Notes: generated by a model not told the origin, from the sequence alone. Positions 43,254 through 46,129 are shown, numbered from the stretch's first letter. The stretch: DNA of 64,000 nt from Tubulanus polymorphus (GCF_964204645.1 NC_134034.1:124001-188000), one strand, 5' to 3'. Translations and numbers: made by a program.

Positions 43254-43426
43254 TGAACTTGAACTTGAACTTATATTTATTGCGCCGTATATAACATTTA
43301 TACATAGGATAAGACATGCAATAAATCTACAGGACAAAACATTAAAGAATGACATTAAATAGAGAATACATAATACATAGTAGCATAATCAAAAAACAAA
43401 AAACAAGAACTTATACAAGAAATAAA
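43254..43426 (-). mobile_element. 5'-truncated non-LTR retroelement 3' end with 7-bp target-site duplication
   Basis: Minus strand ends AATAAAtat(aagttc)x3; flanked by TAGACCT at 43247-43253 and 43427-43433. Confidence 0.7.
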
Positions 43427-43560
43427 TAGACCTGTCAAGCCAGTTCAATCAGGTCTCACAGGTCTTCAGAAAGTTCGACGCCCGATTGAAATTTTGCTCG
43501 ATTTTCGAAGTTTTTGAAACCTAATTTCTCGGATCGTGTTGAGTGTCAACCTTTAGAAAT

Positions 43561-46129
43561 ATGTCTACAGTAAAACTGAATACTGGTGCTTTAATGCCGA
43601 TCATAGGATGTGAGTTAAATCCGATTGTAAAACCATTAAAACTCGATTTAAAAACTGATGAATTTAAATTCAATTCAAATATTGATCCGGTGTTTTTCAG
43701 TCGGCACTTTTCAAATAAAAGGAGAAGCTGTAAAAAATTGTGTGAAAGTTGCTCTAGAAACAGGATACAGATTGATTGGTAAGAAAACTGTCATAGCCAG
43801 GCCCAGGGTATGACTGGGTCTCGTTGGGGCAAAAGGGTTTGAGAAAGTCCAGGCGGGCCACACAGTCACATGGTCAGGGTAATCAGTTTATTTAGGGCAG
43901 ATACTTCACAGAAATAGATCAACAGCTTGAATGTCAAGAAATTCTGCCTTACTGAACACTAGTCAGTAACCTGTCTGTGGTTTAGTTTCACGACCGGATA
44001 TTTTCACAAACCACATGAATGGTATAAGCTCATCCGATTATAAAAAGCTTACCACCAACGATTAGGTAACTAATATACTGAATACTAGACATGAACAACA
44101 TCTAGACGACAATAATAAAGTTATATTTAGTGATTTGGAGATGTGTTTTTCTGAATGAATTGTAGACACAGCTGAAGGGTATGGGAACGAAAATGAAATA
44201 GGAAACACAATCGAGAAAACTCTTCCCCAAATTCCATCCCTAAAACGAAACCAGATTTTCCTTACCAGTAAATTGGGTAAGTGAAATTAGTAAATAAAAT
44301 GTAGTTGTGTTGATTTTTAATACAGATACAGCAGACGTTTATAGAAATGAGGCTGAAATTGGGGCGGCTTTAAAAGAGATTCTGACTCCTGAATCCGGTT
44401 TAAACCGGTCTGATTTATTCATTACCAGTAAACTACGTAAGTCAAATATGAACCATTTTTATACTGTTACCTGTAACAATGCTGTAGGTAAAAAAAGTAA
44501 AGTTTTAGATTGAAAATATGAGAATTTATCTCCACTTCTGATGATGTGTTTTTGGTTAAATTTGAGTGATCATTAATGATATGAACTTCGCTGATAGATT
44601 TGAGCAGAAATATCTAAGTTTTTATTGAAGGTCTTATTCTCTTGATTACTGGTCCGGGTTGGTCCGGGTTTGTCTCTGATTGATTTCAGGTGATACTGAT
44701 CATGATGTTTCAGCTCCTGATGCTGTGTTATATTTCAGCTCCTGATGCTGTTTTATGTTTCAGCTCCTGATGCTGTTTTATATTTCAGCTCCTGATGCTG
44801 TGTTATATTTCAGCTCCTGATGCTGTTTTATATTTCAGCTCCTGATGCTGTTTTATATTTCAGCTCCTGATGCTGTTTTATATTTCAGCTCCTGATGCTG
44901 TTTCATATTTCAGCTCCTGATGCTGTTTTATATTTCAGCTCCTGATGCTGTTTTATATTTCAGCTCCTGATGCTGTTTTATATTTCAGCTCCTGATGCTG
45001 TTTTATATTTCAGCTCCTTACAGTCAGGGTTCGGCCTCAGCCAGAAACGCTTGTCTTAATTCAATGAAAAACTTGGGTGTTGATTATCTGGATTTATATT
45101 TGATTCACTGGCCGGGAGTGAAAGGTTTACAGCTCGACGACCCGAGAAATAGTGAACTCCGTAAACAGAGTTGGTTAGAACTGGAAAAACTTCATAAAGA
45201 AGGTAAAACCATGAAATTTAGGGAGTGTTTTTAGTTCAAGGGAAATAGAAAAGTTCCTCGTGAATCATGAGATTTTGGAATGATTTTTAGGTCTCGTGAA
45301 GTCAATCGGAGTTTCCAACTATATGATAAACCATCTACAGGAATTATTTACTTATTGTACAGTGAAACCAGCTGTTAATCAGGTACAGTAAACTGCACCT
45401 GTCGCACCTGCTGCACCTGTCGCTCGTGGATACGGTAACAATACGAACCGTTTTATATTTCAGTGTGAACATCATCCTCATTTGAATCAACAAAAACTGA
45501 TTGATTTTTGTAAAGAGAATGATGTTTATTTGCAAGCTTATTCATCGCTGGGAAAGGGCGAACAATCGGTAACACTACAATCCAACTAACCGCCGGTTTT
45601 TAGTGTTTTTGATTATAACGTACGCGGACTAAGTATTGATTATATTTTGCAGCTGATTTCGGAACCACTGATCCGTGAAATAGCGTCTCGGATTAATAAA
45701 ACACCGGCGCAAGTTTTACTACGATGGGCCGTTCAAAACGGCACAGGTAACCGGACTTATATCTGAGATCAGTCTCTGCTCACTTTCTTTATCTAGGCCC
45801 AGATTACTGGACTCTGTTCCACAGAAACTCATTTCATGTTTTAACCCCGAGAATCATATCTTAAACTATGACTAGTGGAACCGGGTCCAGACTTGGATCT
45901 AGGTTTAATCTTTGGTTCTTTAAAACCTTTAACTATGCTTAGACATACAGCTACCACTAGCGCCCTCTATTTTATATTTTCAGCCGTTTTGCCGAAATCT
46001 GAAAAATCAGATCGAATCAAAGAGAATTTTGATGTGTTTAGTTTTGAACTGAGCGCGGAAGATTTTGAAAAATTAAACAGTCTTCACAAAGAAGTTCATT
46101 ACGCGTGGAACCCTCACACTGTTGTTTGA
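43561..46129 (+). CDS. Aldo-keto reductase (glyoxal reductase / AKR1A-like), complete, ~287 aa
   Basis: Exons 43561-43609, 43701-43778, [44166-44276 or 44326-44436], 45014-45202, 45291-45382, 45464-45568, 45653-45746, 45984-46129 (864 nt). [64 protein letters not shown]...RIKEN; Asp-Tyr-Lys-His tetrad present. Confidence 0.95.
44166..44276 (+). other. AKR alternative exon 3A (111 nt, phase 1-1)
   Basis: ttgtag|(D)[36 protein letters not shown]|gtaagt. Confidence 0.85.
44326..44436 (+). other. AKR alternative exon 3B (111 nt, phase 1-1)
   Basis: tacag|(D)[36 protein letters not shown]|gtaagt. Confidence 0.88.
44708..45018 (+). repeat. 25-bp tandem array, 13 copies, each containing the AKR exon-4 splice acceptor
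   Basis: Unit gatgctgttttatatttcag|CTCCT; CAG at 44711 + 25n up to 45011. Confidence 0.96.

Follow-up and report, generated by a model that had tools for sequence, protein, structure and literature searches.

The window analysed here is a 64,000-nt stretch of the genome of Tubulanus polymorphus (GCF_964204645.1, NC_134034.1:124001-188000), and all positions are counted from its first letter. On its + strand, from 43357 to about 46400, lies an aldo-keto reductase (AKR) gene with eight exons and one extra copy of exon 3. Exon 1 (43357-43609) comprises the 5' UTR (from at least 43357), the start codon at 43561 and a coding part (43561-43609) that ends in phase 1; one contig of the sequencing run X2, described below, covers 43357-43609 and continues through the joint 43609>43701. 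The constitutive exon 2 (43701-43778, 78 nt, phase 1-1) is joined in X2 to exon 1 and to either copy of exon 3 (43778>44166 and 43778>44326), and its final base, a G, is the first base of a split Asp codon. It is followed by exon 3a (44166-44276), a spacer of 49 nt (44277-44325) and exon 3b (44326-44436). The constitutive exon 4 (45014-45202, 189 nt), with the motif that holds the catalytic His, was placed by its match to PF00248 and by X2 joints, and exon 5 (45291-45382) by the X2 joints 45202>45291 and 45382>45464 and a weak PF00248 match. Exons 6 (45464-45568), 7 (45653-45746) and 8 were placed by X2 RNA contigs together with the PF00248 profile scan. The coding part of exon 8, the last one, spans 45984-46129, includes the cofactor motif and ends with the stop codon TGA (46127-46129), and the 3' UTR of this exon extends past 46400. 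The introns measure 91, 387/547, 577/737, 88, 81, 84, and 237 nt, and RNA contigs demonstrate the splicing of every one. When a single exon 3 is included, the reading frame has 864 nt and encodes 287 residues; it is intact and confirmed by an RNA contig.

The intron before exon 4 contains a minisatellite (44708-45018, + strand) made of 12.4 copies of a 25-nt unit, which starts 272 nt downstream of exon 3b. Each unit reproduces the five bases with which exon 4 opens, along with the TTTCAG, the pyrimidine tract, and the branch-like CTGAT before them. The RNA joints of X2 end at 45014 only, in the last of the copies.

Profile and homology searches were done exon by exon. Against PF00248 (cut-off 24), exon 4 by itself reaches 24.9 bits, and exons 5-8 have collinear matches below the threshold across profile positions 132-289; a search of the genome gives 55.9 bits over exons 5-8. 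By the exon 4 score above the cut-off, and by its catalytic tetrad, the predicted protein is a member of the aldo-keto reductase superfamily. It resembles AKR1A and AKR1B, as well as the short homologues of corals, crabs, and ticks that are named 'alcohol dehydrogenase [NADP+]', in its PF00248 match, its Asp-Tyr-Lys-His tetrad, its His motif, and its LPKS...R..EN cofactor motif. The gene shares its exon 3 boundaries with its orthologues. Unlike AKR1 enzymes, the protein is shorter, at about 287 residues, and has Ala or Pro, not Trp, after Lys-Leu.

Exons 3a and 3b have 111 nt each, are entered and left in phase 1, and have as their sole open frame the one that continues exon 2. The first is preceded by ttgtag and the second by atacag, while GTAAGT follows each, so that the spacer has a GTAAGT donor and an ATACAG acceptor. 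They encode (D)TAEGYGNE...IFLTSKL and (D)TADVYRNE...LFITSKL, respectively. In an ungapped comparison, 17 of the 37 residues (46%) and 59 of the 111 bases (53%) are identical. The split Asp codon is G/AC with 3a and G/AT with 3b, and the codon at the junction with exon 4, after SKL, is G/CT (Ala) with 3a and C/CT (Pro) with 3b. When the genome was searched with either exon, the only match besides the exon itself was the other copy, and the genome has one copy of each. The introns flanking 3a and 3b retain no alignment except at the donor (GTAAGTGAAAT vs GTAAGTCAAAT), and this loss, together with the DNA identity of 53%, indicates that the duplication is not recent. Both the inclusion of the two exons (+222 nt) and the skipping of the two would preserve the reading frame.

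In alignments, the peptides of 3a and 3b correspond to residues 46-80 in human aldehyde reductase (AKR1A1) and to residues 45-78 in aldose reductase (AKR1B1). The catalytic Tyr is residue 5 and the catalytic Lys residue 35 of each exon 3 peptide, the catalytic Asp is encoded by the codon that the upstream intron splits, and the catalytic His is found in the LIHWP of exon 4. In aldose reductase numbering, the two versions differ at positions 46 (Glu in 3a, Asp in 3b), 47 (Gly in 3a, Val in 3b), 49 (Gly in 3a, Arg in 3b), and 79, the junction codon after Lys-Leu (Ala in 3a, Pro in 3b). They are also unlike in most of the helix and loop after these residues. Positions 47 and 79, the latter being Trp79, presumably line the substrate pocket of aldose reductase. 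Among the 37 homologues with the motif, the residue before the Tyr is Val in 26 and Gly in none, and the residue after Lys-Leu is usually Ser, Ala, or Gly, Pro not being seen. Judged by these substitutions, the 3a and 3b proteins probably differ in substrate preference. The first-pass annotation of the window, made from the sequence alone, had described two 111-nt exons of phase 1-1 with AG/GTAAGT ends, open frames, and a 49-nt spacer, had read them as diverged versions of one segment with either Ala or Pro after SKL, and had assigned the Asp, Tyr, and Lys of the tetrad to that segment. All of this was recovered, including the translations as it quoted them, and the alignments to AKR1A1 and AKR1B1 agree with the assignment.

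The stretch is present in four public runs of one study, and the use of the two exons was studied in two of them, X1 and X2, as assembled contigs, with X2 coming from one sample. X2 is not recorded as RNA; it is RNA-like in that all seven introns are removed at GT..AG and that the depth is zero in unique intron sequence. X1 is DNA-like and its contigs pass through the introns. The X2 contigs hold four joints around exon 3, all at GT..AG, namely 43778>44166 (contig depth 169.8), 44276>45014 (130.6), and the pair 43778>44326 and 44436>45014 (98.7). A single X2 contig of 170 nt runs without mismatch from exon 2 (28 nt) through the whole of exon 3b (111 nt) into exon 4 (30 nt). Some joints have short sides of 23-31 nt, with two of the four joints below 30 nt (23 and 28), because the k=31 graph branches there; where the side has 23 nt, it stops at an allelic SNP (44188). 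Among X2 contigs, from which the assembly drops rare variants, we found neither a joint including both exons (44276>44326) nor one including neither (43778>45014), and no RNA contig had the 49-nt spacer alone spliced out. Nonsense-mediated decay does not account for the absence of these forms, because both stay in frame.

The abundances lead to the same picture. By mean contig depth, which is a crude measure, 3a reaches 138.3 (alleles 87 and 51.3) and 3b 98.7. Their sum of 237 compares with 241.6 for the contig of exons 4-8, as expected if nearly every mRNA holds one, and no more than one, of the pair. Exon 3a is the commoner version, with about 58% of the contig depth in X2. Each mRNA thus carries 3a or 3b in this one run of contigs, in which a rare co-inclusion would be possible. 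The four junctions by which the first-pass annotation proposed to check its reading are all present, and the co-inclusion through the 49-nt intron that it held against this reading left no joint among the X2 contigs. Its statement that one gene makes two enzymes is supported by the two mRNA forms and, as far as the residues themselves can tell, by a pocket that would differ between the two proteins.

It is extremely unlikely that 3a and 3b are both constitutive exons, joined across the 49-nt spacer into a protein that has the segment in duplicate. The ends of the spacer (GTAAGT and YAG) are canonical and an mRNA with both exons would be in frame, but in the RNA contigs each exon joins exons 2 and 4 directly and no joint links the two, their depths add up to the depth of the constitutive exons, and a repeated strand-helix-strand would misfit the eight-fold barrel of the AKR fold. 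We give just as little credit to the idea that the two mRNA forms stem from two haplotypes or from a collapsed gene duplicate, with no alternative splicing; the individual is highly heterozygous (about 1%), but two DNA contigs of X1 span 44158-44617 and put both exons and the spacer on one molecule, the RNA containing 3a has both 3a alleles, and the genome has a single copy of each exon.

To place the two exons in the history of the gene, we compared them with eight orthologous genomic loci from marine and other assemblies, the crab Scylla paramamosain, and the tick Ixodes persulcatus. All eight are distant, with an exon 4 identity of at most about 62%, and the searches with exon 4, one of which was exhaustive and profile-free, gave nothing closer than about 64-65% identity. 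In every one of the eight, exon 3 is single and its core has 34 or 35 residues, so that the exon pair is absent from all these distant relatives. Seven of these exons are 58-72% identical to 3b and 44-56% identical to 3a; that of the tick locus, L045, is 42% identical to 3b and has no 3a match. The 41-residue open frame of 3a, used as a query against matchable sequences limited to fragments of 20-70 residues, returned no candidate. Since exon 3 is single and 3b-like in the eight loci, 3b is by this comparison the ancestral-type exon and 3a a diverged copy, confined as far as visible to the lineage of this genome. The copies share an extra codon (111 nt vs 108 nt in the orthologues), which we did not take as proof of a duplication within the lineage, as the aligner puts the insertion differently in each.

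Exon 3a retains all 14 of the columns that are invariant across seven aligned exon-3 sequences, plus its frame and its splice sites, in spite of its low DNA identity to 3b, which argues for selection on it. On the other hand, its two alleles in the sequenced individual differ at five sites, of which four are nonsynonymous (N9H, N13T, E16K, and S24T) and one is synonymous, whereas the constitutive exons have three SNPs, all synonymous, and 3b has none. The four nonsynonymous polymorphisms are all at variable columns of the alignment, and both alleles are present in the RNA of X2. At three of the five sites the alternative allele is the base that 3b has at the matching site, and gene conversion of 3a was considered for this reason; the chance probability is about 0.2, which is not significant.

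With such polymorphisms, and with Gly where homologues have Val, 3a could be weakly constrained. A stronger form of this view is that the 3a isoform is made and is redundant or impaired, so that it is a tolerated product of noisy splicing and there is no second enzyme. Its absence from the eight orthologous loci would fit, as would four nonsynonymous and one synonymous changes in 111 nt compared with none and three in the constitutive exons, and a residue before the Tyr that none of the 37 homologues has. We regard it as unlikely. A copy drifting as noise is hard to reconcile with the conservation of the invariant positions, the catalytic residues, the frame, and the splice sites at this divergence, or with a version that makes up more than half of the contig depth with both alleles expressed, and its polymorphic sites fall in columns where the family itself varies.

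The spacer between the exons is short for this genome. Its best branch-like motif is TTGAT, whose A (44313) follows the 3a donor by 37 nt and precedes the acceptor by 12 nt. The second is TTAAT, for which these distances are 44 nt and 5 nt; the spacer has no other branch-point-like motif. For comparison, we assembled a sample of 31 introns, of which seven are the RNA-proven introns of the reductase gene and 24 were obtained by homology from chaperonin (PF00118) and myosin (PF00063) genes. For the latter, which are predictions accurate to a few bases, the boundaries were set from profile coordinates, reading frame, and GT..AG. The shortest RNA-proven intron has 81 nt, and the guided ones have 80, 80, 80, 81, 84, 85, 86, 89, 98, 99, 109 nt and up, with alternative solutions of at least 71 nt. 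The genome thus has a class of short introns beginning near 80 nt in this small sample (n=31), and the spacer is about 30 nt below the shortest of them. Among AKR paralogues (C9 cluster), to which the guide proteins aligned poorly, rough intron sizes are 75-90 nt. Histograms of intron length made de novo over 264 kb, either from splice motifs alone or from motifs plus flanking open frames, gave no usable signal over controls. The first-pass annotation, which had reconstructed constitutive introns of 70 nt or more, had placed the spacer below the minimal intron size, and this placing fits the sampled introns. The myosin gene of the same genome was found to have four tandem copies of one exon, about 450-500 nt apart.

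In human genes, a distance from donor to branch point below 50 bp is the criterion for steric interference between splice sites, and about 9% of the clusters of mutually exclusive exons have such a distance (PMC5740500). Both candidate branch points of the spacer lie within it, and together with the intron sizes this makes steric hindrance, in our moderately confident assessment, the likeliest cause of the exclusivity.

The exclusivity could also be real and the shortness of the spacer incidental, if the cause were competition between acceptors, regulatory proteins, or local RNA structure. The branch point is placed by its motif alone, and introns of 40-50 nt, thus below 50 nt, are spliced in some animals. 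The myosin exon copies, with their wider spacing, must use another mechanism, if they are alternative exons. Regarding RNA structure, a local hairpin is predicted in which CCUUACC at the end of 3a pairs with its own donor GGUAAG (MFE -19.2 kcal/mol, z -2.9). However, its frequency in the ensemble is 0.04, which makes it weak, and it is largely set by the coding sequence. Furthermore, a search of the flanking introns for inverted repeats of the docking/selector type gave just two AT-rich pairs of 11-12 nt. The 49 nt of the spacer are far under all 31 sampled introns, and exclusivity then needs no further assumptions. We therefore consider an incidental spacer improbable, without dismissing it.

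Taken together, we have high confidence that 3a and 3b are a pair of mutually exclusive exons which arose by tandem duplication, probably exclude each other sterically, and encode two versions of the enzyme, 3b being the ancestral type and 3a specific to the lineage. In this account, a unit of 160 nt (the 111-nt exon and 49 nt of intron) would have been duplicated in tandem in a single-copy AKR gene of about 287 residues. The choice would be made when the donor of exon 2 pairs with the acceptor of 3a or with that of 3b. Once 3a is chosen, its donor could not use the 3b acceptor, given an intron of 49 nt with a branch point at most 37-44 nt away, and would be spliced to exon 4 instead, the shortest normal introns being here about 80 nt. 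Both proteins would keep the Asp-Tyr-Lys-His tetrad and differ at the flanks of the Tyr, in the next helix and loop, and in the residue after Lys-Leu.

The either/or use of exons that were duplicated in tandem is well documented (PMC9013439, PMC8373072, PMC5740500). The reductase pair does not differ in principle from tandem exon duplications and substitutions in general, in which a duplication is local and the copies replace each other (PMC9013439, PMC8373072). A close parallel is with exons 2 and 3 of alpha-tropomyosin, which are likewise adjacent and homologous, equal in length and phase, each joined singly to constitutive flanks, and separated by an intron too short for the spliceosome to assemble, as would be the case here. 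In alpha-tropomyosin, though, the intron is longer and its branch point is shifted toward the donor, whereas the reductase spacer has 49 nt in total. The human cases of steric hindrance differ in their host, which for the reductase is an invertebrate with a class of short introns of about 80-100 nt, and in that the branch point is here a candidate.

Several metabolic enzymes have mutually exclusive exons, such as ketohexokinase (3A/3C) and pyruvate kinase (M1/M2), and in such enzymes the swap alters substrate or regulatory properties while the fold is kept. Other examples are OGDH (4a/4b, PMC7969005) and ATE1 (7a/7b, PMC7797038). As in these four, one reductase gene would give two isozymes through the exchange of an internal exon for its duplicate. 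There are two differences. The swapped exon of the reductase holds, according to its alignment, three of the four catalytic residues and their pocket-lining neighbours, and its duplication is specific to a lineage, as seen against the eight orthologous loci that lack a second exon 3, while those of the other enzymes are conserved across a phylum or across vertebrates. The principle is not new: that duplicated exons can be swapped is well established, for metabolic enzymes too. What is added here is the RNA support, the direction of the divergence, and the comparison of intron sizes. In a limited search of open-access full text, we found no report of mutually exclusive exons in an aldo-keto reductase.

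The exon pair and the tandem duplications of splice junctions that are frequent in this genome, such as the 25-nt array at 44708-45018, suggest a common mutational source. A bolder and rather doubtful extension of this idea is that the tandem duplication of short units, which is the source of splice-junction minisatellites, also gives birth to whole small exons with a sub-minimal flank, and that 3a is polymorphic under diversifying selection. If this were true, such duplicates would be mutually exclusive from birth, as the spacer could not be spliced, and rapid evolution would be open to one of the copies. An RNA-validated case would then be the reductase pair, in which a fast-evolving 3a remodels the pocket, with Val changed to Gly before the Tyr and Arg to Gly after it.

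Under the preferred reading, in which steric exclusion acts on a lineage-specific duplicate, the locus is an RNA-supported case of one gene with two versions of its catalytic core, which are unlike on both sides of the proton-donor Tyr and at one position of the pocket. With such a natural pair, one can ask how the positions that flank the Tyr and line the pocket set the substrate preference of aldo-keto reductases. Given the sharp class of short introns in its host, the locus also lends itself well to the study of how either/or splicing may arise at once when a tandem duplication leaves a spacer that is too short.

The intron preceding exon 4 of the aldo-keto reductase gene contains a minisatellite (44708-45018; unit of 25 nt, 12.4 copies, 97% matches). 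Each unit repeats a CTGAT branch-like motif and the pyrimidine tract, together with TTTCAG and the five bases that open exon 4, and the array thus supplies 12 decoy acceptors ahead of the exon. Among the contigs of the RNA-like public run (X2), the true acceptor at 45014 is the only joint used there and the 12 decoys are left unjoined.

In the spacer-separated pair, the end of exon 3a, UUUCCUUACC, is similar to the 5' end of the U1 snRNA and can pair with the exon's own donor site, GGUAAGUGAAA, in a predicted hairpin of 10 bp (44257-44286). The 89-nt fold has a predicted energy of -19.2 kcal/mol, with a z-score of -2.9. The counterpart in exon 3b, AUUACC, pairs more weakly than the end of exon 3a. 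On one haplotype, an A>T SNP in the spacer (44319) lengthens the pyrimidine tract at the 3b acceptor.

Exon 3a is itself polymorphic. Its two haplotypes differ at five positions in 111 nt (44188, 44192, 44205, 44213, and 44237), four of the differences being nonsynonymous, and the density of SNPs is higher than in the introns around it (about 1%). At three of these five positions the alternative base is the one that exon 3b carries at the corresponding site, an agreement that is not significant and that may reflect ancestral alleles or gene conversion.

Upstream of exon 3a, intron 2 harbors an exceptionally abundant element of about 114 nt (43960-44073). Its summed contig depth is above 100,000 in the DNA-like public run (X1) and above 20,000 in the RNA-like one, and its flanks in the contigs of these runs are many and differ from one another. 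It looks like the insertion of a very high-copy repeat of the SINE or MITE type.

The positions of introns differ between the orthologous reductase loci of other animals. In L001 (8133-8315), exons 5 and 6 form a single exon, and the tick locus (L045:3037-3327) has exons 3 and 4 joined into one. The gene at L043 (5043-5890) is compact, with gaps of only about 58-73 nt between exon matches.

Two observations concern other genes of the Tubulanus polymorphus genome (G000), outside the window. On a small contig (C31:7097-8704), a Cpn60/GroEL-type open frame runs unbroken for 575 residues with no introns, whereas the remaining chaperonin genes of the genome are divided into many exons; this intronless sequence may be of organellar, symbiont, or contaminant origin. 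On the minus strand of C4 (4125126-4126944), the exon encoding positions 119-152 of the Myosin_head profile occurs four times in tandem within a myosin heavy chain gene, at spacings of about 450-500 nt. As in arthropod muscle myosin, these copies probably represent a further either/or cluster, here with long spacers.
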